Shown here: piece by piece, positions 1 through 59,270 of the stretch
Position numbering within the stretch: position 1 is the first letter of the stretch
Layout: each line of letters begins with the position of its first letter
DNA from: Octopus sinensis
Lineage: Eukaryota
NCBI RefSeq assembly: GCF_006345805.1
Contig: NW_021832430.1
Span: 310,001-374,000 of the forward strand
DNA length: 64,000 nucleotides
Reading direction: 5' to 3'
Program-made: the position numbers and the translations under genes
The notes under the pieces: model-generated
What the model saw: the letters and a program-made list of their open reading frames with translations, nothing else
Told to the model about the DNA's origin: nothing
Databases searched by the model: none

Positions 1-1418
1 ATTACATTATAAAATCTGATGTTAATATCAATTATTGCAAAGGTATAAGATTCTAATTTTGTTATAAAATTTAGATATTTTAATCAAGACTCAATTTTAT
101 TAACCTCATAATTGATTGATGTTTTTACTAAGCTATTTTTACTTACAAATCATTAAATCGATCCACTGTCTGAAATGTTTATAGACTCTAATAATAGGTA
201 TTTGACGAAATTAGGTAAAACCAATCTAAGTAATAATTCAATTATATGTGTTTCCAAAAGTTTTTATATGATAGGGATTGTCGGCAAACTATTTGGAGCT
301 TTTATTATCAAAATTATTTCACGTTTGAAAAAAATTATTACTTTTAGGATCTAAACATATAATACTAAAATTAGAATTTATTAAATATCATTAATTTGGA
401 AATCTAATTTTATACATACTTGAGCAGTTGATCATGTACTTAATACAAAACATTTAACAATTTATTACTAACGGTCACCCATAATTAACTAAATAAATTA
501 ATTTGGTGATCTCAACCATCTTTGTAGTAACTACACTCTGTTTTGGAACCCAACCAGCGATAATTGTCGTCCAAAGAGTTCTCAATAAATATCAATTTTT
601 TAGCAAGTTGAAGCCAGTAATTATAATATAAAATTAAAGTCTATAGAACATCTGGACTATGTTTTTTTAATGTGTATTATAAAAATCTTTTGTAAATTGT
701 CGAGACATATTTTATAGCAATTTTGTTGTGAATAAATTGATATTTATTAGATAAATCAACAGAAAATAGCTAATAATGCCCTCAAATTCTATCTTTTTGT
801 TAAATAGGACTTGCTGGGAATAATTTTTATATTAGTTAAATTAAAATTTGACTTTGTGAAACCTTTGACTTCGAAAAAAGAGAAATTTGGTATAATATCT
901 ATAGTGTTTATATAAGCTGAAATTTATAGAAATTAAAAAATATGAAAAAATTATAAATTATAAACAAGGTAATTTATAAAATTATAATTTTTAAATATAA
1001 GTGTATTTAATTAAACTATCCAAATTACTAATTATCTGGCTTTATAGATAAGATGGACAATGACCCGGATCGAATATTGAACTTAAATTTAATTAACAAA
1101 TAAATGTGACATACAGAAGAGAAGCTGAAATTAGAGAATTAGAACAACGAAATTAATTATCAAGAACCGAAAAAATAATAAGTTATTATTATGTTTTTTT
1201 GATCTTTGAAGCACTTTCGAGAAATAAGTGACAAATAGTTATTGTCGTAAGTTATAATGTCTAGGCCCGTTCTAAGTGTCCGGAGTGATAAATCGGATTT
1301 ATCACTCCAAATCATCTAAATTCTTTGTTTAAAATCTGAAATTCTTAATGATTACTTTTGTTAATTCAATAATTTTTTAAATTATTAAAATTTGAAAAAA
1401 GTAACTCAGTTAAAAAGA

Positions 1419-2364: not shown

Positions 2365-3681
2365 TTAAAAGTTAATTTTTTTAATCATTGACTTTGGAAT
2401 TGTCTTCCTTTCACCAGATGTGCAATTCTCAACGAGAACGGAATGCAGAGAAACTTCTTCCACTACTAGAAATAGTTCCTTGCTAAAAAAACTAGTGAGT
2501 GGATATTTTCTTGCTTTTATATTTTTATCGAAATCAATTTTAATTGTAACATTATCTCCAATTGTGATATCTTTTTTTCGAAAATTTTTATTTGCGTCTT
2601 CTGTAACTTTTCTTTTATACTTTTCATTATGAGTTTTTACTTCTGTAACTGCGCCTCCACATGGCAAAATATTAAAACCCGATATTCCGTAAAATAGACT
2701 GAGTAAATAAAAAGAGACTAACCAAAATGGTGACTTTCCAGTTGCGCGATGACAAGTTATGTTGTATTTATACACCACCTTCTGTAGAATTTCTCTCCAC
2801 CTTATAGATTCTGTTGCGAACAAAGTCTTCCCCAACCAACGTTTGAGAGTTTGGTTATATCTTTCTATTTGTCCTTGAGATTGTGGGTGCCTTGGTCATC
2901 CATATATCGGAGTTATTTTCCAATCATCAAAAAGTTTTGAAACTTCTTTGTTGCGGAATTCCTTTCCATTGTCCGAATGAAAATAAATTGGAGGACCGAC
3001 AGTCTGGAATAAACTCTCAATTGCATTATAGATGCTTTGTGATGTTTTATTCTCTAACGCGAATGACCATGCAAACTTTGTGTATGCATCGATGACAGTA
3101 AGTATCCATTTAAAATTGTCATTATTTGCAGAATACCGCCTTAGAACTATACAGTCGGCGATAAAGCTTTCGTATTTTTTTTCCACAGAAATCATTCTGA
3201 TATTTTCACAAGTACTTAAAGAGTTAAATGATTGGCACGGTATGCATTTTGATACAAAATCACGAATTATACATTGTTTAATTTCAATATATTTTTGAGA
3301 AATTAGATAACACATTTTATTGAACCCAGGATGTCCTTCATTATGTTCATCACAAAGAATAGATTGAATCCTTTCATGTTCAAAAGGACATATAACAATT
3401 TTACGTGTTCCTGATTTGGAATAAGAGAATAATTGATCGTCTGCAAAATGAAGAGTTTTACACTTTCTTCGAATTGTTCGCTTTTTGGTTTCTGTCATTC
3501 CAGGTTCATATTTTTTAGACAATAGATATAGTAAAATAGAATCATATTCTCCTTTGCTATTGATGTGTATCGAGCGCACCATGAACAGTTTAAAAAACGT
3601 GAAACTGTTAAATAAAAATTTAAACTTTTTAATATAAAAATCTGGAAAAAATATAGACATTTTATCCCCAATTCGACCCAT
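2365..3681 (-). pseudogene. Ginger2 integrase/transposase (HHCC zinc domain + rve DDE core), one premature stop, one 24-nt intron
   Basis: HNEGH...CIPC zinc motif, WILTVIDAYTKFAW, HSDNGKEF, then G*PRHPQSQGQIERYNQTLK in the same frame (TGA at the 2896 ORF end). Candidate intron 2699-2722 (GTTAGT...CTCAG) restores KSPFCLFYG. Confidence 0.85.
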
Positions 3682-3913
3682 TTCCTATCTAATTCAACAA
3701 AAATAAAATTTCAATTTTTTTGCCTACCAGAAAAACATGCGGGTACATTTTACCAATAATTTCATCCGTATCCCCGTATAGGACGTTATTTAACCAAAAT
3801 TAGGCGACACAAATAAAATTTATTCCCAAAATCATAATGATTTGGAGTGATAAATCCAATTTATCACTCCGGACACTTAGAACTGGCCCGGACGCTATAA
3901 CTTACGACAGTTA

Positions 3914-4277
3914 TTAACTAACTAAATTCCCGGCCTCGTAAATGGAAACACAGTTTCCACGTACTATAGCCAAGGAAATCCTTTCGAGAAGCCACTTGGA
4001 CTCGCGTGGGTCTCCCCGTTTATGGGAGATCATGCGGCCAAGCTTTTTCAGAAAGGAAAGAGACTTTTCGCCGATGACGCCGGAAGTCTCGACGGCGATG
4101 GGAGTGAACAGATACCGTTCAGAGAGCTCCTTGTACTTTCCAATCTTCATCTTCTCGGTTTTGCGAGAGACTGAGCCAGCCTCGACAGCTGAAGAAGGAA
4201 GGTTGAGCTCCGAGAAAGTGTCTGAACACGTCGCATCCCATAACAGAGACTTACCGAACTCAAACGGGAATTTTTAA
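3914..4277 (-). mobile_element. CRE-like 3' fragment (RLE); its 3' UTR is displaced by the Ginger insertion
   Basis: FPFEFGKSLLWDATC...PIAVETSG...WLLERISLAIVRGNC. Stop codon abuts the Ginger TSD; the continuing UTR and A-run lie left of 1242 (about 1190-1242). Confidence 0.85.
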
Positions 4278-5109: not shown

Positions 5110-6715
5110 TTTTTCACATCTCAATACGTTAAGAAAGGTACTTGTTCTGGTGATGCTGGACCTTTTATAAGAGCCTGCGAAGGAATTCCTGTCTTTGAGC
5201 CACCGTGAGTTCAGGGTGTCAGATCTACCACTGATACTGTCTGGGGACATAGGTGGCGTTGTGCTACGTAGCGAAGATTCGAGAAAATTGTGGGAATCGA
5301 TATGTCGAGAGCTTTTGACACAATTCGCTGAGGGAAACTTTCATTCTCCGAACACAAGATTTTCCCGTTTGCTTCATCCGAAGGGTCCTCGCAAGATTGA
5401 TTTGCCACTTCAGCCAACTGACTGGTTGCCGTAATGAATTCCTCTTGAGACGTATGGATTCCATGCCTATGTTCCACCACAATTGCCTCCAATGTCTTCT
5501 TCATGACAAGTCCCTGAATGTACGTTCTTGTCGGGCCTTCAACGGATAACTTCTCCATATAGGCTTTGTAACACGTTGAAACCACCCCGTCCCACGTCAG
5601 CACAATCGGAATAATTCGGACTGGTGCCCCGTAAAGCATCTTTAGTTCTCCAGCCAGCAAATCGTACTTATGCAATTTCTCAACTTCGGTTTGTTTGAGT
5701 CTCTCCTGCGATGTAATCTCCATCTCAATTATGGTGATCTCATTCTTCAATCTGTCATAGATAAAGATATCTGGCTTATTGAACTGAACTTGCGTATCAG
5801 TCAATATTGGCGTATCTACTCTTATCTCAACATTTCGAGCCGATAAACTAGACTGTACTGAGTGAGACTTTAGTTTCCCAGTTTTCTTTATTCCAAACTG
5901 TCTGCATACGTGCAAATGGATGCATCTAAAAACCTCATTGTGCCTTCTCACATAGTCACTGTTTAGCATTCTGTTGCACCGTGTAGCCATGTGGTCTACT
6001 GTCTTCTTAGCTTTTTTGCAATGATCACACAGCGCACCACGCGCAGAAGAAAAAAACAAATTTATATCTTGCAAGAGGCAATACAAAGCTTCACTCCTTA
6101 GTGTATTGTTCCCTTTGTACAGCCACTCGCTAGACATTTTGAGGTCGGAGTTAGAGTCTTCTTTAAACCTGAATAGGACAGAATGGAGTGACTTGTTTTT
6201 TATTTTGTTGGAAAAATATTGTACATAAGCCTCTTTCAGGGATTTGTCAGTGATAGATTGTTTATCAGTCAATCCATATTTAGAGGCAAGAAATCCTGCG
6301 ATTGTCGCCATATGCGGTTTTTCTTTTTTAATAACCCGCAGGATCCCCGACCTTCTGAGACAGATAGCCGACTTCTTCTCCAAGGTTTCCAGAAAATGAA
6401 GCAGCATTAGTTCACTTTTAAAAGCAATTGATGTCAACCCCCTTCCCATGCTCTTTCTTGAGAGGTATAGCCGCTCTTTATTGGCTGGCTTCAGGTGTAT
6501 TTTCAGTGTTGTAAGTAATCTTCGTATTTGGAGATCAATATCGTCAAATTCGAAAGGTTCAATATTGATTAGCCCAATGTAGTAATTATATAAAGACAGG
6601 GCATACTCGTTGATTGTTTTGAAGAGGTTCACTGAGTTTAGTTTAGTCCTTGCTAATCCAGCTGAGAAGCAAAAGTAAGTTGTCTTTAAATTCTTTAAAT
6701 TCATATGGATAATTT
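5110..6715 (-). mobile_element. 5'-truncated R4/Dong-like non-LTR retrotransposon (post-RT region, CCHC, RLE); ORF 5211-6704
   Basis: KLNSVNLFKTINEYA, RLYLSRKSMGRGL, CDHC...TVDHMATRC...YVRRHN, KPDIFIYD...IIEMEIT, KYDLLA, IPIVLTWDG. RT core absent. Confidence 0.85.
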
Positions 6716-6732
6716 ATCCATTTAAAATGGTT

Positions 6733-7722
6733 TGATGAAAACCAACCAATAACTACAAGTTAATTAATTAAAAGCTTCAAGTGCGGGAAGCCGACGCGAT
6801 CGAGAAAGAATTAGAGCGAGAAAGAATTACATTACGTGCCCTCTGAGTTATCATCGGCGGTCGTAAAGTGGCACTCGCTAGGACTGGAAATCCCAGAGGA
6901 TCAGCATAAGCAATTTGTTTGGGACGAAGTCCGCCTACAATCCCGAATCCAATCTTTACGTACATCTTTCGACCAACACCGCTTGGCCTGCTTTGAGACG
7001 GCATGTCGCCCTCACAGCGGAGCCTGGCTAAATGCCACTCCACTGCCGAGCATTGGGAACCTTCTGGACTGCGAGTCCGTACGCACTGGAATCTGTTTAC
7101 GTCTCGGTCTTCGCCTATGCGAGCCACATGTCTGCCGCTGTGGCGCGAAAATCTGTCGCTTTGGATTGCACGCTCTATCGTGCAGACGCAGTGCTGGCCG
7201 CATCCCGCGTCACGCCGCTCTTAACGACCTTATCAGGAGAGCCCTGGAAGTCGCCGGAATCCCCTCCCTGCTTGAACCCACTGGGATCGATCGGGGGGAC
7301 GGAAAAAGGCCTGACGGGATAACTGTGTTTCCTTTCAACAGGGGGAAGCCTCTCACCTGGGATGCCACGTGTGTGGACTCTTTCTCGCCTCAGAACCTGC
7401 TGATGTCGGCCTCCGCTCCTGGATCTATTGTCACAACCGCGGAATGCAAAAAGATGCGGAAGTACTCCTCACTTACGGAGAAGTTCCAATTCCTTCCATT
7501 CGCGGTTGAGACTTCCGGTTCCTTGGGCAGTAAGGCAATCAGCTTCGTTCAGGAGATCGGATCCCGCATGTCTGCCATCACAGGCGACGCCCGCGAATCG
7601 AGATGGTTTTTCGAGCGGATATCCCTTGCGATAGTACGCTCTAATTCTTTCTTGATCGCGTCGGCTTCCCGCACTTGAAGCTTTTAATTAATTAACTTGT
7701 AGTTATTGGTTGGTTTTCATCA
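6733..7722 (+). mobile_element. 5'-truncated CRE-like retrotransposon capped by an inverted copy of its own 3' end; 13-14-bp TSD
   Basis: ORF 6836-7678 has CCHC and RPDG/WD/ETSG RLE motifs. 6733-6818 is the reverse complement of 7637-7722 (86 bp, 1 mismatch). ATCCATTTAAAATG occurs at 6716-6729 and 7722-7735. Confidence 0.93.
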
Positions 7723-7741
7723 TCCATTTAAAATGAACTAG

Positions 7742-11609: not shown

Positions 11610-12782
11610 TTAACTGTTTTTGTTTATTTTATTAAAACGTAAAGTTTCATGTGAAATTTCTGATGGCATTTTAAATTTTTTCTTATATAAAAATGTAAAT
11701 TTTGAAACTATCACTGGAATTGGGAATGATATGATTAATATTCCAGAAAGAGAGCAGAAACCTGCCACAATTTTTCCATAAACTCCCAATGGTCGCTTAT
11801 CTCCATATCCAACAGTTGTCATTGTAATAATAGCCCACCAAAATGCATCCGGAATGCTTAAAAAGTTACTATTGACATTGGTTAATTCTGCGTAATAAAT
11901 TAACGACGAATAAAAGAGAATTGTGATCATAAAATAAACCAGCATTAGCGTCAAACAATCAAGTGAATAAAAAATAGCTTTTCCCAGTATTTCTAGACCA
12001 GTTAAATTATTTGATAACTTAAATATTCGAATTATTTGGATTATTAAACAAATCTGGTTAATTGTGTACAATATACTGTGTTTGATTAATCCATGAGCAT
12101 ATATAACTTCAAATATAGTTTGTATGTATAACGGTGAAATGCTTAAAATGTCAACTATAAATTTTCCAGAAAAACATTCTGAAATAATTTTATAAATCAA
12201 AAATAAGCGAATGATCATTTCAATTGTAAAATATGTTGTAAACAGAACTTCAATTGCAAAAATATAATTAATTTTGGAAAGACTTTCTATCCTTATATCA
12301 TTGTGTGGATAAGTGCGCAAACATAAATTTGCAATGGAAAGCAAAATTAAAAGATTTGAAAATATTTGAATAATCTTTCCACTCATAGATAAATCAGGAA
12401 ACTTTAAAGTTATCCATATAAATCTCAAAAAAAAATTTTCTGGGATATTTATTTCTTTCGGAACGTAATATGGACCAATTCCTTCGTCAGCATACATATT
12501 TTCGATCGACCGACGATCAATTTCAAAAAATTCTACTTCTCTTGTAAATATGTCTATATCGACGTTTCCTGGTTTTTTTAGGTTTCCCTCATTTTGGTAA
12601 TAATTTATAATTCCTTCAAAACTGTCTCGATGTCGGTCAAAAAAATATTCGTTTCTAGTCTTATCAAAATATTCATTTAATTTCAAAGGATTTCCCAATA
12701 ATGTTTTTGGAAATTTTTTAAAGTAACATTTGTCAAGTTCGAATTTTCGTCCACTGATATTAATAGAGATTATATCTAGCAT
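11610..12782 (-). CDS. Intronless Shaker/Kv1-like K+ channel alpha subunit with charge-depleted S4
   Basis: T1 domain (NISGRKFE, FPKTLLG, EYFFDRHR), six TM segments, pore FWWAIITMTTVGYGD, S6 PIPVIVS. Single 390-aa ORF. Confidence 0.93.
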   Translation of the reverse strand: MLDIISINISGRKFELDKCYFKKFPKTLLGNPLKLNEYFDKTRNEYFFDRHRDSFEGIINYYQNEGNLKKPGNVDIDIFTREVEFFEIDRRSIENMYADEGIGPYYVPKEINIPENFFLRFIWITLKFPDLSMSGKIIQIFSNLLILLSIANLCLRTYPHNDIRIESLSKINYIFAIEVLFTTYFTIEMIIRLFLIYKIISECFSGKFIVDILSISPLYIQTIFEVIYAHGLIKHSILYTINQICLIIQIIRIFKLSNNLTGLEILGKAIFYSLDCLTLMLVYFMITILFYSSLIYYAELTNVNSNFLSIPDAFWWAIITMTTVGYGDKRPLGVYGKIVAGFCSLSGILIISFPIPVIVSKFTFLYKKKFKMPSEISHETLRFNKINKNS

Positions 12783-13793: not shown

Positions 13794-15301
13794 CAGCGGT
13801 TCTCAACCGTGGTCCCTAGGAATTTTGAAAAAATAAAAATATATTAAAGTTAAAAATAATTGTGTAATTAAGTATAAATCAAAAACATTGATATTAACCT
13901 GATTTTATCAGCGTGGTTTATCATTCTAATGCAGCGGTTCTCAACCGTGGTCCCCAGAAAATTTTTAGTGGTCCCCAGGAATTTTCGAAAAATAAAAATA
14001 TATTAAAGTTAAAACTAATTGTACAATTAAGTATAAATCAAAAACATTGAAATTAATCTGATTTGATTAGCGTGGTTTATCATTCTAGTTATGGTTAACA
14101 AGAATCGTCGTCTTTGGTCGGATCACGTACAATTTGGATTCACTAAATTCATTGCCCCAAACTCAATTTTCAGCAGAGCTTGATTGAACTTCAATGTAAT
14201 CAGTCTGCTCAGATTATTTTCAAATGTACTTCATTATTAGATTTTTGGTATTCTCATTAATAATTACTTTTTATTGTTAGGTGTCAGATGGCGAAAGAAT
14301 TCCCCATTTTGAGTAAAACTGCATTGGAATCAATACTTGCATTCCCCACTACTTATCACTGTGAAATGGCGATGTCGTGTCTGACTTTTCTAAAAACAAA
14401 ATATAGAAATAGACTACGGGTACAAGATGATATGCGAGTAGCTTTGTCGAACATAGAGCCTGATATAAGTAAAATTATTCTGAGCAAACAAGATCAGAAA
14501 TCTCACTAAATTACTATTAAATTTTCTGTTATTTTCATAATGTTCATGTTATTTTTATAATAAATATTCGAACATGTCTAAACCTGGCCCTGACGAGGCC
14601 AAAAATTGTGCGCTAATACCAAAAAATGTTTATTTTATTTAAGGTGGTTCCCACAAAATTTTATAGTGCAAAAGTGGTCCCCAGTCTAAAAAAGGTTGAG
14701 AACCGCTGTTCTAATGGTTAAAAAGAATTGTCGTCTTTGGTCCGATTCCTACTTTCAATTTGGATTTACAAATAAATAATAAATTTGGATTTACTAAATT
14801 CATTGCCTTTAATAATGAAATAAAGGCAAAACGCATGATTTTCCATAGAATTTTGGGAAACAATTCACTGAAGCCTTCTAATTTTCTTCTTAGTTTGATA
14901 ATCAAACACCTGGAAAATCTCAAGACAAAATTTGATGATTACTTTCTTGTTGAAGATCCAATTCCAAACTATATCGTTCAACCTTTCTTGACTTTATTTA
15001 AAGAATATCAGCAACTTAATTTTCAGCAGAGCTTGATTGAACTTTAATGTAAACAGTCCGCTCAGACTATTTTCAAATGTACTTCATTATTGGATTTTTA
15101 GTATTTTCTCAGATTATTTTCAAATGTGCTTCATTATTGAATTACTTCTTATTTTTAGGTGTCAGATGGCGATAGAATTCCCAACTTTGAGCAAAACTGA
15201 ATTGAAATCAAAACTTGCATTCCCAGCTACTTATCACCGTGAAATTGCAAAATTTTATAGTGCAAAAGTAGTCCCAGTCTAAAAAAGGTTGAGAACTGCT
15301 G
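13794..15301 (+). mobile_element. Non-autonomous hAT/Buster element (outer copy)
   Basis: TIR CAGCGGTTCTCAACC at 13794 and GGTTGAGAACTGCTG ending 15301. Flanks AACTAAGA/GACTGAGA (6/8, nnnTAnnn). Internal Buster transposase remnants. Confidence 0.8.
13932..14708 (+). mobile_element. Non-autonomous hAT/Buster element (inner copy) with perfect 8-bp TSD
   Basis: TIR CAGCGGTTCTCAACC...GGTTGAGAACCGCTG; TSD TTCTAATG at 13924-13931 and 14709-14716. ORF 14288-14509 is the hAT C-terminal dimerization region (FPTTYHCE...KTKYRNRL). Confidence 0.92.
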
Positions 15302-15500
15302 GACTGAGATGATATTTGGAGGGATGGCAGGTCCTAAAGGTCCATAATTACGAAGAAAATACTATATTTAATAAATTGATAAATTAAAAATAGTTTAGTT
15401 TATTCGTTAATTATATTGTAATAATTTCAATTTTTTATCAATAAAAGTAGAATATCTTGTTTACTTTTTTTGTTTGTCCCTGTTTCATTGAGTGTTTCCA

Positions 15501-16336
15501 ATGAATATCCAGTTAATATCTCTCTTCATTGTCACAGGTTTGTCAATGCTGTAACCACAGTGTGTTCGAGATGTGATTTTCACTTTTATAGTCACCAAGA
15601 CAATAACGAATATAAAGGAAAGTGCTATCGCCTGTTTAGGACATTCAAAGATTGGTACAACGCCAGAGACCACTGCAAGACTATGGGCGGATCACTTGTC
15701 CTTAAACCCTTTTCAATTATTAGCTTACCATCCAATCAGCAGACAAATCAGAATTTATCACCAATCTTTTAATCGATACCCCTATCTTTGAAATATACGA
15801 AATATACACTGGAGGACACTGGAATGGCTTCAGATGGAATTGGAATGGTGAAGGTAGTCATTGATATTGATCATAGCCGTGCTCGGGTCATTCAAGAATT
15901 GGGGGGATTCTGGTCAAATGAGGTCAGGGGATTGTATTTGCCTCAAGAAAAATATGAATTGGCGATGGGACGATTGCAATTGTCAGTACTTCACGAGTGC
16001 CTCAGGCTTTATTTGCGAGACTTGTTTAGTTCATTTTTGACAAATTTGTAGCCGCCCTTCCGGAAATTCCCAGAGAAAGTAAATCAATTGGCGGTTTATT
16101 TTAGGGCAAATTGTGCCTATTGTGATCGGGATACTTTTTGGATTTTTCATAGCTGTGTTCCTTATTGCAATTGCTGTCAGACTGTTTGATTGAGTGATTG
16201 GTCATCCTTTAGATTAGTTCAGAGATATCCGAGGAGGAGACTCCCCTGTGTAATTCCATCTCTTACAGAAAGCCCTGCTTTTGCTGACTACAAGGACTCC
16301 CCACCCTCTTACAGTGAGGTCATCAAAATATATTAA
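15501..16336 (+). CDS. Type-I membrane C-type lectin-domain protein, 6 micro-introns
   Basis: Spliced product: signal peptide MNIQLISLFIVT, CTLD (KCYRLF..WYNARDHCKTMGGSL, WNGFRWNW, CICL..WRWDDCNC..GFICE), TM segment, tail ending DSPPSYSEVIKIY*. Confidence 0.8.
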
Positions 16337-21145: not shown

Positions 21146-22020
21146 TGATCCTAGTCGTTTGTTTTTTTTCAAAAAAGTTTCCAAAAAATGCATATGTGCG
21201 AATAAAGATGGAGAAATAATTACAGCTGTGAATTACAAATACGAAAATGATAACCCTAGGACAATACAATCAAGTCGGGCTATAAAATTGTGATTTAAAA
21301 ATTCGTTTGGCGCTCTTCACTTATGCACTGTAACATACTTTTTCAATTATCAATTCATATTTACATTAAAAAACGTTCATACTAATTGAAAAATTAAACA
21401 AATTCGTTGTTGCCGTTAGATAAGTTTGATTCAAAAAATTGTCAGCTAGCTATTCTGGTTTGCGTCTGATATGGATCGTCTACTTGTTTTGCTGACTCAT
21501 TTTTTAAGAGACGGTTTCAAATCTTCATATTCAAACCACCATTAGAATCCGTAAATTAGGAAAGGTTCGATCCCAGTTGAAAATTTTAAATATAAATAAA
21601 AATTTCCGAATCTAGAGAAAGGCCTGTCTATTTTACCAACTCCGTTGCTTTTTTCCTTTAGGGTCCAATATCGCTTCTGAAGATACTTTCTATTTATTTT
21701 TAACTAAATATATTATTTAATCGCTTATCTAATTTTCTTATTTTTACTAATCCATATTATTGAGCTTTTTACTAAATAAAGGAAACAGCCACCACGAGAC
21801 TCCAGAGGAACCTGACAAGGATACAGACGCAGTATTCCGGCCCATGAATCTGGCGGAAGGAGGCGGATCGATAGCAAAGCGAAGGAAGTTGGAACCAAAA
21901 TTCTCATGATAAGATATTTTCTCCACTTCAATGAATTTACTAATTTGGATTTTTTAGTCTATTTTTTCACACTATTTTTTTAATCAGAGGAATTTAATTC
22001 AAAATGAAGGGGTTATTTGA

Positions 22021-23758
22021 TATTTTTTTTTGAATTGTTATTCATTTTATTACCAAAAACAACTAACACCGAAAATCGTTAAGTTCCAGCGGCGAGGACG
22101 CAGTGTGCGTTGCCCCGAACAATGGCCAGGCCGATGCGCTGGCGGAACCAGAGGCCCTCTCTCGAGTCCTTGAGCCTCCTCCCGATGGACTTCCCGACCT
22201 CTTTGAGGAACGAGTCAGTCTCCTTTCCTGCAACTCCAGCGGTCTCCAGGGCGATTGCCGTAACGCGGTAGCGGTCTGCGAGCGAAGAATATTTGTGTAT
22301 TTTGATCTTTTCGGCGTGGTTTGCAGCCGAACAAGGGTTTGCCGCAGAAGAATGGATCCTCGATTTCGAAAAGGTATCCACAACGGTGACATCCCATACG
22401 AGGGCCTTCCCCGACGAGTACGGGAATATTGTCATCCCGTCAGGCCTTTTGCCATCTCCCCGATCGAGTCCGACCGGTTCGAGGAGGCACGAATGGCCCG
22501 CCATTTCGAGGCCGGCCTTCACGATTTCATTGAGGGCCTTGTGTCTGTGTTCCCTGCCTGCGCTCCTCTTGCAGGAAAGTGGGTGCAGTCCCTTTTCGTC
22601 AACGTTCTCACCGCATCTGCAGCGGTGTTTTGCACAAACATCCAGGCCGAGACGGTGAGCCACTCCGATGCGTATGGCAGCATCGTCTAGCAACGTCCCG
22701 ATGCTGGAGAGAGGAAGAGCATTCAGCCAGCTGCCAGAGTGAGGGGCGGATGCCGCACGAAGGCATGCCAGGCGGTGTTGATCAAGGGTTGCAGAGAGCT
22801 CAGACACACGCGCTCGGCATGCAATAGAGTCCCAGGCACGTTGGGAGGAGAAATCTTCGGGCCTCTCAGAAAAGGAGCGATCCCAGGTAGTGAGCCCATC
22901 CGAAAAAGCACCATCCAGGCAAGATCCGAAAGATTTGAGTAGGATCTCAGAGGCCAGGTTGTTGCACATCGAAAGGGAGGATAGATATGCCGGAAGTGCC
23001 ACATCGGATGCAGTGCGGATTCCCGCACCTCCGAATCTCAATGGGAGCGAGCATTGGGCCCATCCAGGACCATCGAGGTGTACATTGAGGACGGATTCGG
23101 CAGTCTTTTTCAGGATTACGTCGTATGCGGCGAGTAGGTCCATATGCAGGAAGCAGGGATTGCTCCTGAGGGTGAAAATGAGTTTCGGCATATAAATGCT
23201 GTTCTTCAAAAGGAAAAAGGCAGTGTGCGAGTCCAAGATAGAAAGATTTGTTGAAAGTCTTTGGAAGTGTTCGGCTTTGGCGGAAAGCATGCATTGGAGC
23301 TTCGTGTCGGACAGGGATCCCCCGAGAAAGGTGACATCATCGATTGGGGTAACGTTCGCACAAGGCAGGGTTGCTCTGAGGCGGGCCACAGCGGATCGGA
23401 AGTCGGCCTCCGAACACGAGACATTAATGATCTCGGTCTTCTTCGCGTTGACCGAGAGGCCGAGGGTAGCCAGTGCTGGTACGATGTGTTCGACATCCCG
23501 AATAACGTGGTCAGCATGGCCACCCAATGTGGCATCATCAAGATACCACAGATTGAATTGAGGGACAGCAAGGCGAGCTGCCTCATCGATTGTCATCGCG
23601 AAGAGGAGTGGCCCTAGCGGATCACCCTGTTGCACGCCGGTCTCCGAACGGATGATCTCATTCCCGTATACAAGACTGCTCTCCGAGCCGTAGGCAAGCG
23701 AGACAAGATTGAAAAGACAATTCAAGACAATTCAAAATGAAGGGAAGGGACAATTCAA
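22021..23758 (-). mobile_element. 5'-truncated CRE-like retrotransposon (RT, CCHC, RLE; open 548-aa ORF 22079-23725), A-tail, 25-bp TSD
   Basis: GVQQGDPLGPLLF, WYLDD, CRCG..H.LSC..RH..LN, RPDG, ETAG. T9 run at 22023-22031. AATTCAAAATGAAGGGGTTATTTGA at 21996-22020 and 23759-23783. Confidence 0.95.
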
Positions 23759-23783
23759 AATTCAAAATGAAGGGGTTATTTGA

Positions 23784-23960
23784 TTAGTTTGGTTATTGGC
23801 ATATGGCAAGGGAATTATTTTTGACTATAGCCAACGAGATTCGCTTAGCTCTCTGGTGCTTGATAAGTCGCCGGTAACCCTTTCCGTAAGTGATCCGATG
23901 TGTTGTAGCAGGCCACGAGTGGAAGCCCCCTGTATTCCAGACGTCTTGAATGCTAGGGGG
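23784..23960 (-). mobile_element. Older CRE-like 3' end (same family as 50640-51975) whose 3' UTR received the 22021-23758 insertion
   Basis: KRISLAIVKNNSLAICQ*; DNA similar to 50690-50850. Confidence 0.7.
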
Positions 23961-24339: not shown

Positions 24340-24655
24340 TCTCTGGGATGACCACCTTTCCTTTTCAGAGAGGAAAGTGTCTGGTTTGGGACGTCACGTG
24401 CGTGAACTCCTTTCCCAATCGGAATATCAAATTGAGTATCGAAAATCCGGGAGCCCCGTCTGAACGTGCTGAGAAGAGAAAGAGTGAGAAATACGCTGGA
24501 ATTGGGAATGGCAGAGTGTTTGTCCCCCTTGCTGTTGAGACTTTAGGAATACAGGAGCCTACTCCTGCGAATTGGCTCACTAATCGAAAGGGTTACCAGC
24601 GACCCGTCTGAGCACCGGTATTTAACAGGACGAATAGGCATAGTCAGAGGCAATA
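24340..24655 (+). mobile_element. CRE-like RLE fragment
   Basis: GMTTFPFQRGKCLVWDVTC...AEKRKSEKY...VPLAVET; small internal deletions relative to 50690-50920. Confidence 0.85.
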
Positions 24656-30504: not shown

Positions 30505-31853
30505 GCGCAGCAAAAATTACTCTTTGGAAGTTTCTCTATAAAATAACATAATTTAATTTATTAAGTGAGAATCTTTGTGACAGGGATCGCCAAGTTTTCT
30601 TTCAAGTTAGCGACCGGGATCTCAAAGAAACGCATATACATATACCTTTGTGCGAAATTAAAATGAGTTCGATTTCAAAATTAAAAACACAAATAGACCT
30701 GTCAAGTTCAAGAATTTGGTTAAATGCCTTATAACTGGGCAGTTGATCATGCGATGCAAAGTGCTTTAAAATGCTATAAAATAAATTAACTTATTAATTA
30801 AGCAGATGATGAAAAATTTGCCAATCTACGTTTTTAAAAAATTAAAATCTTCGTTCCGAATATTCGCATATATTCTGATTTTACGCGAATATTTGAATGT
30901 TGTCTTTGACTATGTTAATAATTCTGCACTTAATCTATTGTATTAAATAAGATAAATAATATTTTATTTAGCAGCCAACGTCGGTTCTGACATTAATGTA
31001 TTTATTTGGCAGTTTTATAAATATAGAATGCTTTCGGTGATATACAAAAATTCTTTGATAATTCCTTTAAAAAAGGTTATGTTTGCAATAAATATTCAAG
31101 GAAATCAAAATTCCAACATTTGTTTTTTAATTCCGACATTCACAGTGATGCTGGTCGTGGCATATTTGTAACATCATTTACTTAGTATTGTCTCATTTCG
31201 GTTTCTAACTTTCGCTTGTTTAATTTATGTCAGTTTTTCTTGGCGTTTTAAGCTTTAAATATAATTATTCTTATCTGTTGTGTCTTTTAGTTAATAATTG
31301 AATAAATGATGTATTTTTTTGTTGGAAAACTCTGTTGGATGTCCGTTTTCAAAAGTGAACATAAATAATAATAAAGACAAAAAAGAAGCATTTATCATAT
31401 GAAATAATTTGGGAAGCAACATTACTGTTGTGCTTAAAACCAATAATCCTTCGATCGGAGCTATGAAGATTTTCAACACGTTATGCAACATAAAATCTAT
31501 CAAAAATGCACAAGTTTCTTGCCGACAGTCTGAAGAGTTTCTACTGAATTTCAAAATCAAAAAGATGTGGAACTATCATTATTCACGGATACAGCTCAAT
31601 GATGTACCTTGGCATCATGGTGCTAAAGTTGGGACAAGAACATCAATATTTTACAAAAAAATCTATTGATATTCGGAATCCTGATTAGCTAACTGTAACA
31701 CACACTTTTGAATAAATAATTAATATTTCTACGTAAATTGTTCTAAACTCGCTGTCAATTGGTGGGCAAGTGTGTTAATAATTGTTCTAATTCTCTTATA
31801 AGTGGTTAAGTGTTTTTCAAAATCTGTAATTGCACTCTATTCAAGTTCGTTTT
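30505..31853. repeat. ~1.35-kb dispersed repeat (uninterrupted copy), possibly a decayed hAT-like transposase on the - strand
   Basis: Aligns at high identity with 53322-53372, 53567-54577 and 58708-58990; partial third copy near 27050-27220. Weak RRWL and DWQIF..LFYS..SHDQLPS motifs. Confidence 0.8.
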
Positions 31854-32239
31854 AAGGGCTTGTGTTCGATTTCAACAAGCTACCTGTGCCCAAAAGCTCG
31901 GATTGGACTGTCAGATATTAGAGTTATTACGATTCTGCTAATCTGCGACTTGACAACGGCAAATCCATACGTAACTAATTTGGACACCAATATTGTCCTA
32001 CAATTGAAGGTGGCGGTCTTAATCTCTATAATCTTCTTGCGCTCCTACGTTATATGTCGGGCTGATGTGTGCGTCATTTTTTGAATCCTCTACCATTAAC
32101 TATCCTGGACACCCGATACAGACCTACTTTGGGAGGTGGTAGGCCTCATTACGGTCATGTGTCATAGGCTTTGCTTAGAAGGGCGGGCAGATGATTAATG
32201 CAGAATTTGTGAACTCCCTAATTGACTAACGCTGGCCCG

Positions 32240-34020
32240 AGACAGACGATGCAAACTTTGTCGGCTTCAGGAGCTGGGTAAATGTTTGGTCGACCTCAAG
32301 CTGATTTAATCAGTAAGCTCAAAAGATCTATTAATGATGTGACCAAAGTAAAAAAGATGCCAGGTTTTTATTTGATTTGGTGGCTCTCCTAAAAGAGGGA
32401 AGCAGTCACCAAATAAATCAAATGTAACCAGGATTACTCTGGTTAATGCCCGCTCTCCTCAAAAGCGGATGAATTTATTTATCGTTTATTTTCTTTTAAA
32501 GCACAGTTCGGATGAATTTATTTATCGTTAACGAGACGAAAATCAAGAGTCTGAGAGTACAGTGCGACCTCGAATTTTGGAAAACTAAGTAGCTGGGAAA
32601 CTTTCTTTTTGTAGAAAACTTTGCTTTGGAGAAATATTTTTGCCATTCCTGTAAAATACGACGATTTTCAGTAAAATAAAACCCCTATTGGAAATGTTCC
32701 TCAAGCATGGAAGAGGACAATTTTTTGCATGATTTCGAAGAAAAGAAAACCGAGTTCTGATTCTGCAAATTAAAGACAAATCGGTACTTTTGCATTTCAT
32801 CCTGCACGAAAATAGCCACTAAATGAATTAATGAAAATTTTTATGAATATTAAATCGAAAATTTAAAAAATTGAACTATGCCGATTTTGTAAATTTTATT
32901 TTTAAAAAAATTTGAATTTTTAACCGGCTTGTGGAGATGAATGATACAGTTGTCATGCGAAAATTTGCAAAACTGAAGGACTATGAACTTCCCCGTACTG
33001 AAATGGAGTCAGTTGCCTTCCTTCAAGAGGTTGGAATCTTTCCCAAAGAAAAAAATGTCAAAACAGACATTTTATGACCCTTCTCCAACAGCGGGAGAAT
33101 ACAACATGGGTGTGCCATAAAAGTGGGTGTCGAACATATAGTTCAAGTGAGCCATTTAGACAACTCCTTCGATGAGCTAATAGATGCCATTGTCAAATTT
33201 TGTCCCCCGAATATCACGCTTCGTAGTAACAGCTGACCTTTTTTGTTGTAATAAAGATTTTTTCACTGAGGGAATGATGATAAGCATCTTTATTAACCAA
33301 CAACTGTGTCTTTTTAGACAGGTGGTCGTTAATAGCTCAGATTTAATTTTGTCGGTATTGTTTTGACACCACTAAGCCTATAAAAAATTCAAATTTTTTT
33401 AAAAATAAAATTTATAAAATCGGCATAGTTCAATTTTTTAAATTTTCGATCTAATATTCATAAACATTTGCATTAATTCATTAAAGTGGCTATTTTCGTG
33501 CAGGATGAAATGCAAAAGTACCGACAAATCAGCCTTAAATATTCTATCCAAAAAATCATGGAAAAAATTGTTTTTAAAAATTGTCAACTTATATTGAAGA
33601 TAAAGAGTATTTTTTGCAAGAGCAATGGGAATTTTGGAGTAACAAAAATGCTGAAAATTGTTTTTCAGGGATAAAGGAGGCTATACTTACAGCACAAAGG
33701 AAAAAAGAATATCTTACAACCGCATGTCTAGACATGTCAAAAGCATTTGATAGCGCCTGCCATGCCTGGCTATTACGAACTTTATATAATTTTAACGTTG
33801 GAAAGACAGCCCTAGTTTGGATAAGGAGCCTCCTCTCGTGAAGAGGATCGTTTGTACGGGTCGGAAATTAATTGTTCCAAAGAATTTTGTCCAAGAGAGG
33901 AGTTCCACGTGGATCTGTCATCAGTCCACTTTTATTTAATTGTGTGATATATGAAATTCCTCAAGTGGATCATCCTAACTAGAGATGACTATTTACGCAG
34001 GTGATATTTCTATTTTACAG
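32240..34020 (+). mobile_element. Degenerate Jockey/I-like LINE (ORF2 start and RT) interrupted by a Merlin element
   Basis: ITLVNARS...FIVNETK, then ISKKRKPSSDSAN-RQISL..IMEKIV, CLDMSKAFD, GVPRGSVISPLLFN, YAGDI. Confidence 0.8.
32783..33522 (+). mobile_element. Non-autonomous Merlin (ISXO2/IS1595-like) DNA transposon, ~150-bp TIRs, 8-bp TSD
   Basis: Ends GGTACTTTTGCATTTCATCC / GGATGAAATGCAAAAGTACC; TSD GACAAATC at 32775-32782 and 33523-33530. Internal AFLQEVGIFPKEKKC..H.M.L...WVCHKSGCR zinc-ribbon remnant; DDE core missing. Confidence 0.88.
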
Positions 34021-37012: not shown

Positions 37013-37876
37013 GCACGTGAAAAATGGGTCTACTGGTTTTAACTAAAGATACTTTGTCAAAAATCAAAAAATACAAAGAATCCCAGAATTTGGATGAAGT
37101 TTTCGACAAGAAGGAGAGATATAAAGTCAAACAACATGCAGAAACCTTTTCTTTTGCTGATGGAAAAGCTTATATACGAAGAAATGGCCTAAAACTACGA
37201 TTTTTTTGTATTGAAGACGCAGAACTAAAATTACTAATGATTGAAGTATTGGTTGTATCATCTAAAAATAGTCCGAGCATAATTCTAATCATTTTGGAAG
37301 AGATCGAATGATTAGTCATCTGAAGACAAGGATCTATGGTGTTAGTCGTTCTGAAATATTGCAAGTTATCAATAACTGCGTCTTTTGTCAGGTAAAAACA
37401 TTAAAATTTATTTATAGTCCAAAAAATTAATGAAAAACAAACGGAAATGTAAATTCGACGAAAAGGTTGTTTATCACGTGTTATAATGCGGATTAAGGTG
37501 GGGGATAATGTTCTATTACGGCAAGATATTGATGCTAAAAATAGAAATTATCCATTATATGATCAAATTGATACGAAAAAATATAAAGTTATTGCCAAAG
37601 AAAATATAAATTTTGATATTCAAGATGAAGAAGGATTTGTCGTAAAAGGGACAAATATCGCGAGACTTTATAAAATTGAGTAATGTTTTTGTTTATAAAA
37701 AATAAGGCTTGTGTTAAAATAAGGGTTAAGGATATTTTGGGGTTAGGGATAGGGATAAGGTTAGGGATAAGGTTAGGGTTAGGGATAAGGTTGGGGTTAG
37801 GGATAAGGTTAGGGTTAGGGAGAAGGTTGAAGTTAGGTTAGCTTTTGGGATAAAGTTGAGATTTTATCACGCGACA
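37011..37876 (+). mobile_element. Internally deleted Ginger-like element (HHCC and C-terminus retained, rve core lost), two 26-nt introns
   Basis: Splicing 37246-37271 and 37392-37417 gives SEHNSNHFGRDRM...CVFCQ. RIKVGDNVLL matches ITIGDNVTI of the first Ginger. Right end TTTTATCACGCGACA; left end degenerate. Confidence 0.72.
37741..37838 (+). repeat. Telomere-like hexamer array (GGTTAG interspersed with GGATAA/GGATAG)
   Basis: About 16 in-phase hexamers, partly as an 18-nt GGTTAGGGTTAGGGATAA unit. Confidence 0.9.
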
Positions 37877-53566: not shown

Positions 53567-55430
53567 AATTTAATTCATTAAGTGAGAATCTTTGTGACAG
53601 GGATCACCAAATTTAATTTCAAGTTCTCAAATCGGAGAAATCTCAAAGAAACGCATATACATCTACCTTTGTGCAAAATTAAAATGAGTTCGATTTCAAA
53701 ATTAAAAACACAAATAGACCTGTCAAGTTCAAGAATTTGGTTAAATGCCTTATAACTGGGCAGTTGATCATGCGATGCAAAGTGCTTTAAAATGCTATAA
53801 AATAAATTAACTTATTAAGTAAGCAGATGATGAAAAATTTACCAATCTACGTTTTTAAAAAATTAAAATCTTTGTTCCGAATATTCGCATATATTCTGAT
53901 TTTACGCAAATATTTACATGCTGTCTTTGACTTTGTTAATAATTATGCACTTAATCTATTGTATTAAATAATATTTTATTTAGCAGCCAACGTCGGTTCT
54001 GACATTAATGTATTTATTTGGCAGTTTTATAAATATAGAATGCCTTCGATGATATACAAAAATTCTTCGATAATTCCTTTAAAAGAGGTTATGTTTGCAA
54101 TAAATATTTAAGGAAATCAAAATTCCAACATTTGTTTTTTAATTCCGGCATTGACAGTAATACTGGTGGTGGCATATTTGTAACATCATTTACTTAATAT
54201 TGTCTCATTTCGGTTTCTAACTTTCGTTTATTTAATTTATGTCAGTTTTTCTTAGCGTTTTTAAGCTTTAAATAAAGTTACTCTTATCCGTTCTGTCTTT
54301 TAGTTAATAATTGAATAAATGATGTATTTTTTTGTTGGAAACTTTTTTCGATGTCCATTTTCAAAAGTGAACATAAATAATAATAAAGATAAAAAAAGAA
54401 AATTTATAATATAAAACAATTTGGGAAGCGACATTACTGTTGTGCTTAAAACCAATAATTTTTCGATCGGAGCTATGAAGATTTACAACACGTAATGCAA
54501 CATAAAATCGATCAAAAAGGCACAAATTTCTCGCCGACAATCAGAAGAGTTTACTGAATTTCAAAATCAAAAAGATGTGCAAAACTTTTTAAATAAATTA
54601 GAAGAAACCAAACTTTTTAGGGAAGGCCATTCTCTAAAAAATAAGAAATTCGGGCCAGTAACGATAATTCTAAAGGATGACCCAAATTGGATGAAAATTG
54701 AAGGACTTGAAGACTTCCCGAAAGGAAAAATGAAAGGAAAATGACTTTCAAAAGCCTTTAGAAAAGGAGAGTGAGACTGCCTATCATTAAAATTGTAACT
54801 TCTGATCACGGAGAAGCTTAATCGTTTGTATTTTTAGTTCTAAAGATCGGCTTTTCGAATGTAAAGGCGCAAAGGTACAAAAAATCGGAAGTCTAGTGCT
54901 ATCAATGCAAGGGTTTGGGACATAGCACGCTTTTGTAAAAATCAGGAGAAATGTCTATTTTGTTCGACACATATGCTGGAACAGACTGCAAGGACTAACA
55001 TGAAAAAATGTGTCAACTGCAGTTTTCGACACACTTGGCAAATTATCGGGCTGTATGAAAGCCAAAGAAGATTCAAAGGTTAAAAATAAGAAAATATTGG
55101 CGTGAAAACTGTTAAAAGAAGCTTCGGAGAATGCCAAGATCAACCAAAAAGATATAAAAAAATTCAGCCTTGAAGCCATAAGCAGGATGGAACGTTCCAA
55201 GATTTAGAAAAACAGCTGAAGTTGGAATACAAACAGAAGAAACGGCTATACAGACTTTGTCGACTTCAGAAGCCGGGTTAATGACGAGTCAACCTCGAAC
55301 TGATTTAATCAGTAAGCTCGAATGGTCTATTAAAGATGTTACAATAACTAAAAAAGATGTCACGTTTTACTTGGTTTGGTGGCTCTCCTAAAAAAGGGAA
55401 GCAGCAATTAAATAAATCAAATGTAACAAT

Positions 55431-58400
55431 AAAGCTAAATTGCACGTTGTTGCTGTTGTGGTGCACTTTTTTCTTTTTCTTTTCATTGTTATTTGCTATC
55501 CAATAATCCATTGTTGCTTCCCTTTCTCTTTTTTGTTTTTCTTTTCCTCTTTCTCTTTCTTTCTATCTCACCAATAATCCATTTATTGCTAATTCTAATT
55601 TTCCATATCTATGTCTGTCTGTTCTGTTTGCAATATCCGTAATAATCGGAAAAAGACCATCCGTTGTGACCGTTGTTATGCCTTTTTCCATTTATCCTGC
55701 ATCAAGCTTTCTAAGAAATCTGCCTCTTCCCTTTCCCGATGGGTTTGCTCTGCTTGCTCTTCTTTCCCCCGTCATATTTCGCTCCTGCCATCTGTACCGG
55801 GTCCTCTGATTTTACTAATCCTATCCCTTCGCCGGACCCCTTCCTGCTTAATCCAGAGTCTGTCTTAAGACTCGCTCGTGATTACCGGGCGTCCTATCGT
55901 ATTCCTATAAGAATTCCTCGTTCTGCCCGTTTTTCCGCGGCGAAGGCTCTGTCTGCTTTGATCGAGTCAGTCATTTGTGTTCAGTCCATTCCGAATTGGA
56001 ACCGTTTGTTTTGCTTCGCCATATTTGCCCTGGGCTCCCCAGTTCAAGGCTTGGGCTCGGTAAAATCCCTTTCCTCTTCCATCAAGGAAAATATTAATAA
56101 GTTCATGGAGGATTCCTTCATTCTGCCTCCTCTTCTGGGCAAGTCCCATGAACCAACTACTCTTAAAGATAATCGTATTCGTTTACGCAAACGTGTCAAT
56201 TCCTGCCTTATGGCGCATGATGTCGGCTCTGCGGTCCGTATTCTTTCGTCTTCCGATTCCGTCCGTTCGATAACCCCGGATGTCCTCAAAATTCTCAGCG
56301 CCAAGCACCCGGCTGGCGATGTCCCTGCCTTTTGTGCCCGGACCCCTGAGGAGGTCTCGATCGCCTCTTCATCTGTCCAACAACTTTTGTTCGCTTTGAA
56401 ATCTTTCAGGGGGAACAGTAGTGGTGGTGTTGACGGTCTCCGTCCCATTCACTTAATGGACCTCATCTCCAATACTGCTGAGGCTGGAAACCGTCTTTCT
56501 CAATCCATTGCCAAGCTTTGTAACCTATTTCTCCGTGGGGACATATCCGAGCATGCCAGACTGCTCTTCTTCTCTGCGAACCTGTCTGCTTTGGGGAAGA
56601 AAGACGGCGGCATCAGACCTATTGCCGTCGGGAACGTTTTTTGTCGCTTGTTTGCAAAGGTCGGATGCAAGCTTGTAATTCCTTCTATTAGCGACGAACT
56701 CCAGCCTATTCAGTTGGGTGTGGGGGTACCTGGTGGGTGCGAGGCCTCGGTCCACGCTGCCCGGTGTTTCATTGAATCGGCTCGTCTCTCAGAGCGGCCC
56801 CAGTTATTATTAAAATTGGATGTGAAGAACGCTTTCAATTCGCTCAATAGAAAGCATCTTCTTGAGGTTTGCAAGGCCAGAATTCCTTCTCTGCTGCCCT
56901 TCATTTTTCTTTCTTATGGTAACCCGAGCCTCTTGGTTGCTGGCGATTCTTTCATTTCGTCTTCCTGTGGCGTACAGCAAGGCGATCCTTTGGGTCCTTT
57001 ATTATTTGCCCTCTCGGTGGACTTTGTCGCCCGCAGGATTGCGTCCCCTCTTAATATTTGGTATTTGGACGACTGTACTATTGGTGGTCCGCCCGACATT
57101 TTGCTAAACGACTTGCAATCTCTACTCCCGGCGTTGTCATCTATTGGTCTTGAAATCAATTCTCTAAAATCTGAAATCGTTAATCTTAACGTCGAAGACC
57201 TCACCTTCGAAGACCTTTTTGCCCAGTTTCGTGGCCTCTTGCCCGATCTGAGGCAGACCTCTCATTCTGAACTTGAAATCCTGGGTGCCCCGATCCACCA
57301 CCAATCGGTCTCTCGTATTCTCGATTCCAAGAGAAATGCTCTTGCTTCTCTTTGTGATAAACTTGTGGACATCGATCCCCATCCCGCTTTTTTTATCCTC
57401 AAAAACTTTCTTTTGATTCGAGGATCAATTATGTCCTAAGGAGTTCCTGTTGCTTCTCTGTTCCCTCTGCTTTGGAGTCTTTTGACGCTCTGGTGCGTTC
57501 TTCAGCCGAGATTATTTTTAACGTCAAGTTCGATGATGTCGGTTGGCGTCAGGCCAAACTTCCTGTTCCTTTTGGTGGGCTTGGGCTCCGCTCGGCTCTC
57601 GACATTTCTCTTCCCGCTTTCCTTTCATCGTCTTCAGGATTGTATCTTCTTGTCCATAAGATTCTTGAAAAATCGCCGGATCTCGTTTGGACTCTGATAT
57701 TAATTCTGCACTTTTGCTTTGGAAGGAAAAAGGGCTTGAGTTCCCTTCTGATAGGTCCCTCCAACGTGAATGGGATAAAATTCTTAGTAAGCATCATGCG
57801 GACTCGTTGGAGGCTCTCCTGAACCAGCACAGACTGGCTTGTTACCGTGCCAGCCGCCAACCGCATTCTGGCTCTTGGCTTAACTGCCTTCCTTCGACCC
57901 ATTTGGACACCTGTCTTGACTCCGACGCCCTCCGTTTTGGCATTTGCCTCCGCCTCGGACTTCCGATCTGTAGTCCCCACCCCTGCCGGTGCGGATCTAC
58001 TATGGACGTATACGGGCTCCATGCCCTCTCCTGCAAGAAAAGCGCGGGTCGTATTCCACGCCATTCGGCGATTAACAGAATCATTCTCGACTCACTCGAA
58101 AAGGCCGGCTACCCTTCTGTCCTTGAGCCTAAGGGTCTCGACCGTGGTGTCGGGAAAAGGCCGGACGGCTCTACGTTGTTCTCGTTTTATTCTGGGAGAC
58201 CTTTGGTCTGGGATTCCACTTGTGTGGATACCTTCTCAAAGTCTTTCATCAACGAATCGGCCTCTCTTGCTGGGTCTCGTGCTAATAAGGCTGAGCTTTC
58301 GAAGTGCCGGAAATATCAGTCTTTGACGGATGACTTTTGGTTTTGGCCAATCGTTGTCGAGACTTCCGGCGTCTTTGGCTCCGGGACCCTCACTTCCCTA

Positions 58401-58582
58401 AAGAAATTGGGACATCTTTGTTCTTCGCGGTCCAAGGACCCTAGGGAATTTACTTTCCTCATTCAGAGGATCCTGCTGGCTGTCATGCGTGGCAACAGCT
58501 GTTCCCTCCGTCTCGCTGGGAGAATTTATTAGTTTGTTGACTTTCCTTTTTTATTATTCACATTAAATAAGTAAAAAAAAAA
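55431..58582 (+). mobile_element. Apparently full-length CRE-like retrotransposon with PHD finger, A13 tail and 12-bp TSD
   Basis: AAATGTAACAAT at 55419-55430 and 58583-58594; A-run 58573-58585; pyrimidine-rich 5' UTR; empty-site paralog at about 32420. Confidence 0.93.
55611..58532 (+). pseudogene. PHD-RT-CCHC-RLE polyprotein broken by three frameshifts (about 55770, 57420, 57680)
   Basis: C4HC3 PHD (CSVC...CDRC...FHLSC...WVCSAC), RT motifs (KDGGIRPI, LDVKNAFN, QQGDPLGP, WYLDD), CRCG..H.LSC..RH, RPDG, WDSTC, VETSG. Confidence 0.9.
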
Positions 58583-59149: not shown

Positions 59150-59270
59150 TTTGCATGATTTCGAAGAAAAGAAAACCGAGTTCTGATTTCGCAAATTACA
59201 GACTAATCAGCCTTATATATTCATGGAAATCATGGAAAAAATTGTTTTTGAAGATTATCAATTGCAATTT
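59150..59270 (+). mobile_element. LINE RT fragment, empty-site paralog of the Merlin insertion
   Basis: Matches 32725-32782 joined to 33523-33590 (GCAAATTACAGACTAATCAGCCTTA). Confidence 0.75.

Follow-up and report, generated by a model that had tools for sequence, protein, structure and literature searches.

An insertion of about 1 kb in the genome of Octopus sinensis combines a 5'-truncated copy of an R2-like LINE with an inverted copy of that element's own last 86 nt, and a single target-site duplication brackets both. With moderate confidence, we attribute this composite to one retrotransposition event in which both nicked ends of the target primed reverse transcription. The insertion lies in a 64-kb stretch of record VCDQ01001009.1 (assembly GCA_006345805.1), hereafter called the window, whose base 1 is base 310,001 of the record; coordinates refer to the window unless another locus is named (Table 1).

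The 86-nt inverted repeat described in the initial annotation is present, with 85 of 86 bases matching between the left arm (6733-6818) and the right arm (7637-7722). The sole mismatch, G6802 against T7653, is on the sense strand a CG on the left where the right arm has TG. Because two other copies, L091 and L089 (described below), both carry C at the position of T7653, the right arm must have undergone a CpG-to-TpG change, and the arms were identical at birth. The right arm is the genuine 3' end of the element: given the position of the stop codon and a 3' UTR of just 44 nt, the arm consists of 42 nt of coding sequence followed by the 3' UTR. Its terminus, ...ATCA, also ends the independent L091 copy, which has different flanks.

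Arm and body together are bracketed by an exact 14-nt direct repeat, ATCCATTTAAAATG. Since A7722 doubles as the last base of the element, the unambiguous target-site duplication measures 13 nt; from base composition, the chance of an exact match of 13-14 nt at a fixed place is about 1e-8. Three extra bases, GTT (AAC on the sense strand of the arm), separate the left duplication from the arm and are not present at the right junction. The left junction (CATCA-AAC) is indeed no copy of the right one (CATCA-TCC), as had been pointed out before, and no copy of the target-site duplication lies between the inverted arm and the body. For these two reasons, a single insertion event would be the simplest reading of the sequence. 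GTT is also the reverse complement of AAC at 7736-7738, the first three bases past the right duplication, a match with a chance of 1 in 64. We considered microhomology, hairpin (P-nucleotide) addition and copying of the right flank as origins of GTT, none of which accounts for it.

At the inner joint, the arm ends in a stutter. The stutter had been described as 13 nt long; it is real, but its unit measures 16 nt with one mismatch (15/16; GATCGAGAAAGAATTA at 6798-6813 and GAGCGAGAAAGAATTA at 6814-6829). A tandem ATTAC-ATTAC (6826-6835) directly after it marks the joint, and past the stutter the arm sequence departs from that of the element's 3' region. In line with the hairpin potential noted earlier, a sense RNA of the whole unit is predicted to close an 86-bp stem containing a single G.U pair. 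The 3' region itself folds no better than shuffled sequence (z = -0.43), so we do not claim a structured 3' UTR.

Table 1. Coordinates of the insertion and of the adjoining host palindrome in the window.
Feature	Position	Strand	Remarks
Flanking 8+1+8 palindrome ATGGATAA-T-TTATCCAT	6705-6721		Host sequence; overlaps first 6 nt of the duplication
Left target-site duplication (A)TCCATTTAAAATG	6716-6729		Exact 14-nt repeat of 7722-7735
Extra nucleotides GTT	6730-6732		G6730 outside the target
Inverted arm	6733-6818	-	Reverse complement of the element's last 86 nt; starts at 3' terminus ...ATCA
16-nt stutter, inner joint	6814-6829	-	6819-6829 re-copy AGAAAGAATTA after a 16-nt back-slip
5'-truncated LINE body	6830-7722	+	Exact start between 6830 and ~6842
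Intact 280-codon frame	6836-7678	+	Linker, CCHC zinc knuckle, restriction-like endonuclease
Right arm, genuine 3' end	7637-7722	+	Stop codon 7676-7678; 3' UTR 7679-7722; T7653 derived
Right target-site duplication	7722-7735		Exact 14-nt repeat of 6716-6729

The insertion is young, and its 280-codon frame, which is open from 6815 and lacks an ATG start, has not been interrupted. The 280-aa ORF aligns with hundreds of animal and metagenomic proteins. The protein database contains no protein of the same family (best match 57% identical), a scan of IMG/VR gave no match, and a sequence search of the PDB with a relative as query reached E ~0.7 only. Pfam returned nothing informative for this ORF, for the 497-aa ORF of the host element or for a 126-aa ORF. 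An AlphaFold model built from the alignment (pLDDT 88.9) was matched by Foldseek to R2 proteins in the PDB, which took the top seven places with E-values of 3e-5 to 2e-3. Across 26 sequences, C100, C102, H112 and C116, R125-H126, K157-R158-P159-D160 and D176/T178 are invariant or nearly so, and correspond to a CCHC knuckle, an RH pair, a KRPD motif and a D-x-T motif, in keeping with a PD-(D/E)XK endonuclease fold. The window copy itself is truncated and contains no RT; in its relatives within the window, RVT_1 immediately precedes this C-terminal domain (22079-23725 on the minus strand; 55739-57439, then 57687-58532). From the invariant motifs, the upstream RVT_1 of the relatives and the match of the modeled fold to R2, we conclude that the body is the C-terminal part of an R2-like LINE, with its predicted linker, zinc knuckle and restriction-like endonuclease. 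This agrees with the initial classification as a 5'-truncated non-LTR retrotransposon of the restriction-like-endonuclease type. The copy also bears the hallmarks of TPRT, namely 5' truncation, a defined 3' end (...ATCA) common to L091, a target-site duplication and the lack of LTRs.

The founding members of the CRE clade (CRE1, CRE2, SLACS and CZAR) insert site-specifically into spliced-leader RNA genes. The body had been labeled CRE at the outset; no such targeting is apparent here, as the window copy sits between other LINE fragments on both sides and its clade relatives are dispersed over unrelated sites. The published annotation of O. vulgaris names Dong-R4, Hero and R2 among the recently inserting families, and the term 'CRE' is absent from its main text.

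The window is AT-rich and densely packed with retroelement fragments, and 13 of its segments belong to the R2-like LINE clade. One of them (22022-23758, minus strand) is a 5'-truncated LINE with both RT and endonuclease, framed by exact 26-nt direct repeats (21996-22021 and 23759-23784) that form a long target-site duplication for this clade; a partial copy at 1420-1857 is 92% identical to it. The 497-aa ORF at 5211-6704 (minus strand) belongs to a different endonuclease-type LINE and carries a gene annotation in the assembly. Leaving aside O. sinensis paralogues and unnamed proteins from metagenomes and read assemblies, it is closest (42-47% identity) to proteins annotated as 'reverse transcriptase', from the microsporidia Vairimorpha apis and Hamiltosporidium and, in one case, from Papilio xuthus. 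We found no paralogous empty site for the insertion; the paralogues of the host element are just 52-64% identical at the protein level. Elsewhere, the window contains a single-exon ORF resembling a voltage-gated K+ channel (11610-12782, minus strand; BTB_2 and Ion_trans), an integrase (rve) fragment of an LTR retroelement (2896-3681, minus strand) and an interstitial tract of degenerate TTAGGG-like repeats (37725-37849; GGTTAGGGATAAGG units at spacings of 12 and 18 nt). The regions 30550-32782 and 53567-59208 have blocks in common (79-100% identity, in partly different order) and represent a paralogous repeat or a segmental duplication, with a near-full-length LINE (55739-58532) between the common blocks of the latter. 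The element at 32781-33524 measures 744 bp; its terminal inverted repeats, ~150 bp long, are 94-100% identical, and it is accompanied by a short duplication (ACAAAT). A paralogous site without it is uninterrupted at ~59195-59215, which identifies the 744-bp element as a MITE-like DNA transposon insertion.

Our search for related copies covered nine further O. sinensis loci totaling 195 kb, or 259 kb with the window. The window contains no second copy of the family. One such copy, 97% identical, was found at 15078-15789 of locus L091 (VCDQ01000515.1, ~126,942-127,653). Its direct part (15291-15789) corresponds to the window copy from 7213 to the 3' end and is abutted on the left by an inverted part (15078-15290) that is the reverse complement of window positions 7031-7245, the two parts overlapping by 33 nt. 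The inverted part therefore carries 180 nt that are absent from the direct part and that cannot have been copied from the first cDNA; it requires a second priming on RNA (twin priming), and snap-back of the cDNA cannot have produced it. Judging from the arrangement of its parts, this copy shows that the 3'-OH of the second strand can prime reverse transcription on RNA of this family. The breakpoints lie close together in element coordinates, as they do in L1 inversions (PMC11702581). After its 3' end, ...ATTATCA, comes what is probably a degenerate duplication (21-23 nt), and the L091 copy lacks 11 nt, GGTTGGTTTTC, found in the 3' UTR of the window copy. A further locus, L089, provided a plain 5'-truncated copy from a related subfamily (89% identity).

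Inverted 5' parts occur in 2 of the ~33 clade copies in these 259 kb, both from one family, and an inverted 3' terminus in none of the ~31 others. Minus-strand self-BLAST of 80 metagenomic loci with relatives revealed no inverted 3' end upstream of a body; the candidates in L004 and L083 were explained by diverged neighbors or by unrelated repeats in the flanks. The two Tara Oceans contigs bearing the closest proteins likewise have no inverted termini. Within the window, three arrangements were considered as second examples and set aside. The pieces at 23790-23960 and 24345-24655 are diverged (71% and 84% identical to a reference copy), have unrelated DNA between them and are independent, those at 1236-1315 and 3837-3916 lie tail to tail 2.5 kb apart, and 32781-33524 is the MITE-like element. 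Tail-to-tail pairs at L092 (18263-18367 and 18999-19102) and in the window (1243-1315 and 3837-3909) each oppose a longer LINE copy to a short, 3'-UTR-only fragment of the same family; the partners lie 0.6-2.5 kb apart in opposite orientation, their arms are 86-92% identical, and an origin at a single site is impossible for them.

The structure of the window copy can be laid out as a sequence of steps, should both nicks have served as primers. The endonuclease would nick both strands, with 13-14 bp between the nicks, and each end would be left with a 3' overhang. The bottom-strand 3'-OH would prime ordinary TPRT at the 3' end of the RNA and yield a cDNA of ~890 nt, the 5'-truncated body. The top-strand 3'-OH would gain three extra nucleotides and then prime at the 3' end of an element RNA, either a second molecule or the same one used again, which is possible given that these enzymes displace strands. 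This second cDNA would stall at 86 nt, slip back by 16 nt and re-copy 11 nt, after which an A/T-rich micro-repeat (ATTA/ATTAC) would be the point of its joining to the first cDNA's 3' end. Fill-in would then leave the element, with both of its 3' ends facing outward, within a single target-site duplication. Because the left arm is antisense on the top-strand left flank, either the top-strand 3'-OH was extended on a sense template, inward from the 3' terminus of the element, or the first cDNA was continued on an antisense template. We infer that the left arm was templated by RNA and primed at the top-strand nick; a snap-back that ran to the 5' end of the first cDNA would yield an identical product with cDNA as the template.

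The initial annotation had proposed a symmetric dual TPRT. Its dual part is plausible in light of the twin-priming-type inversion in the same family; its symmetry finds no support, and snap-back gives the same topology. Priming from both nicks is favored by the outer end of the 86-nt arm, which coincides exactly with the canonical 3' terminus (...ATCA) and adjoins three extra bases. In R2 PRINT work, a junction of genomic DNA to the 3' end of the template marks TPRT, and snap-back junctions are internal (PMC11371274); by this criterion, the left junction speaks for TPRT and against snap-back. Priming from both nicks is favored further by the single perfect 13-14-nt duplication around a composite whose arms were identical at birth. 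In addition, the duplications of 13-14 nt in the window copy and ~21-23 nt in L091 imply long 3' overhangs, as with L1 inversions, and L1 5' inversions are accompanied by duplications of 10-20 bp (PMC4245944, PMC11702581). Against it, just one copy with the exact structure of the window copy was found in the 259 kb of O. sinensis and the 80 metagenomic relatives. The top-strand primer (...AAAATG) also lacks pairing to the RNA 3' end, so that three untemplated bases are needed.

A serious rival, and the one to which we give most weight, though less than to priming from both nicks, is cDNA snap-back after a single TPRT. The 3' end of the ~890-nt cDNA would fold onto itself at a TAATTCTTTCT site ~810 nt away, where abortive restarts would leave the stutter; synthesis would then copy the cDNA to its 5' end, add AAC and jump to the top-strand overhang, where the product would be sealed. 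This route requires only one RNA and one priming event. It needs an inverted part nested in the direct part, as in the window copy, and the reiterated TAAT / TAATTCTTTCT at the joint resembles unstable priming at a landing site. Snap-back is, moreover, an established class of 5' junction for insertions made by R2 proteins in human cells, in which reverse-complemented transgene cDNA is fused between the upstream target and the insert (PMC11371274; PMC11331408). The window copy is alike in its R2-like enzyme and in its nested, reverse-complemented piece between the upstream target and a 5'-truncated insert. It differs in that the inverted piece ends exactly at the 3' terminus of the element, plus three extra bases. 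We know of no reason why snap-back should stop at this point. Synthesis would have to halt no more than ~1 nt from the boundary between cDNA and primer despite a template that continues covalently into target DNA, and the continuation observed is AAC, not TCC. The 3' end of the cDNA (...CACGTAATG) also has no clear base-pairing to the landing site, and priming from the second nick is demonstrably used by the same family, as L091 attests.

Other rivals invoke two events, the target palindrome or the unit as a whole. Two separate insertions of this family at one site, facing in opposite directions, the one an extremely 5'-truncated copy of ~97 nt and the other placed right at the junction without a duplication of its own, would be a quite improbable origin. 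Very short 5'-truncated fragments of the clade do exist (a 73-nt 3' UTR piece at 1243-1315), such elements crowd the region (13 segments in 64 kb), endonuclease-type LINEs can have site preferences, and the left copy of the duplication would remain a target. Yet there is no duplication between arm and body. The one perfect duplication brackets both, at odds with two insertions each having its own, which the initial annotation had named as the outcome that would speak against it. The identity of the arms at birth also counts against two insertions, it is improbable that a second event would abut so exactly, with no target bases lost or gained, and the other opposite-orientation pairs (23790-23960 and 24345-24655; 1243-1315 and 3837-3909) are diverged and apart. 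A fold-back at the DNA level seems more improbable still. Here, the 3' end of the top strand (...CATTTAAAATG) would mis-anneal, by way of the palindrome, to the right target copy on the sense strand, and a polymerase would copy the 3' end of the element inward, as in inverted duplications that arise by replication or repair. CATTT-A-AAATG would permit such mis-pairing, which would also predict the G at 6730, the base that lengthens the palindrome at the left junction. The expected junction is, however, ...AAAATG-GA-TGATG and the observed one ...AAAATG-GTT-TGATG; single-stranded sense DNA would be required before the left end was sealed; and such palindromes are common. We rate equally low the idea that the 1-kb unit is a propagating, non-autonomous terminal-inverted-repeat derivative or an artefact of PacBio assembly. 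Inverted termini, a duplication and an RNA that folds into an 86-bp stem give it a transposon-like appearance. However, neither a second copy of the unit nor of its joint occurs in the 259 kb of O. sinensis, and its ORF is a truncated LINE frame and no transposase. The likeness to the terminal inverted repeats of DNA transposons, drawn at first, is formal only. Missed adapters give rise to palindromes with zero spacer. The present unit differs from these: its 86-nt arm comes with a precise duplication, and it lies 315 kb into a contig of 509 kb, so that an assembly artefact is unlikely.

The palindromic target had been stressed at the outset; we do not accept it as the cause of the structure. 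The 8+1+8 palindrome next to the insertion is present as first reported. For the target, given as CCATTT-A-AAATGG, only the core stands: since G6730 is an added base and not target-derived, the site rebuilt from the two flanks has only CATTT-A-AAATG. Palindromes of this 5+1+5 form number 145 in the 64-kb window (2.3 per kb), whereas the rarer 8+1+8 form occurs six times. Around the palindrome center at 6724, the top nick lies 5.5 nt to the right and the bottom nick 7.5-8.5 nt to the left. The cut is thus asymmetric, and a symmetric dimer acting on a palindromic site is not supported. The L091 target is an A/T-rich tract with no evident palindrome.

Among known systems, priming from both nicks is closest to L1 twin priming, in which the second-strand 3'-OH primes reverse transcription (Ostertag & Kazazian 2001, as cited in PMC11702581 and PMC4245944). 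The window copy has in common with it the inverted and direct pieces within one duplication of ~10-20 bp and the micro-repeat at the joint; L091, with its 33-nt overlap at the inversion point, fits the pattern fully. By contrast, the inverted piece of the window copy is the 3'-terminal 86 nt, nested in the direct piece, and not the 5'-adjacent part of the RNA; a second priming at the RNA 3' terminus accounts for the duplication of these last 86 nt. The window copy works like an extreme form of twin priming in which the second priming occurs at the 3' end of the RNA. The element classes also differ: the window element is an R2-like endonuclease-type LINE and L1 is of the APE type, and in cell assays 5' inversions are nearly confined to L1 (PMC4245944). 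The concept had been presented as lacking precedent, but L1 insertions built from two oppositely oriented reverse-transcription products on different templates have been documented (Mendez-Dorantes et al. 2024 preprint, PMC11702581). There too, each of the two opposite DNA ends gains a reverse-transcribed extension before ligation, and the joint shows microhomology or untemplated bases. Those events are somatic or from cell culture and involve two different RNAs, whereas in the window copy both pieces are the 3' end of the same element, fixed in a germline genome and in a different class of LINE. Penelope-like elements with inverted 5' partial copies have a superficially similar inverted-repeat architecture. 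They encode a GIY-YIG endonuclease, in place of the R2-type PD-(D/E)XK domain and CCHC knuckle found here, and, unlike in these elements, the inverted structure is rare in the octopus clade. A classical inversion and a copy with a 'double 3' end' within one octopus endonuclease-type family are new in detail, not in kind.

How R2-like LINEs complete integration, in particular how the second strand is nicked and primed, is actively studied, as the enzymes are under development for gene insertion, and outside L1, few natural copies bear a record of second-nick priming. Together, L091 and the window copy suggest that the second nick, given long 3' overhangs, can prime reverse transcription in the R2-like class too. 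In R2, the second nick is made by a second protein subunit (PMC13486585). That the protein of this octopus family, loaded with RNA, can start genuine TPRT at both nicks of one staggered break is a possibility that we raise tentatively. The practical consequence is modest, an 86-bp inverted repeat and a predicted stem in a sense transcript. If TPRT from both nicks is true, the family would recurrently make copies with two outward-facing 3' ends besides ordinary twin-priming inversions, and it would give rise to hairpin RNAs and to long inverted repeats of retroelement origin. The window copy would then also be natural evidence that the subunit behind the second nick of R2-like elements can be bound to RNA and active as a reverse transcriptase.
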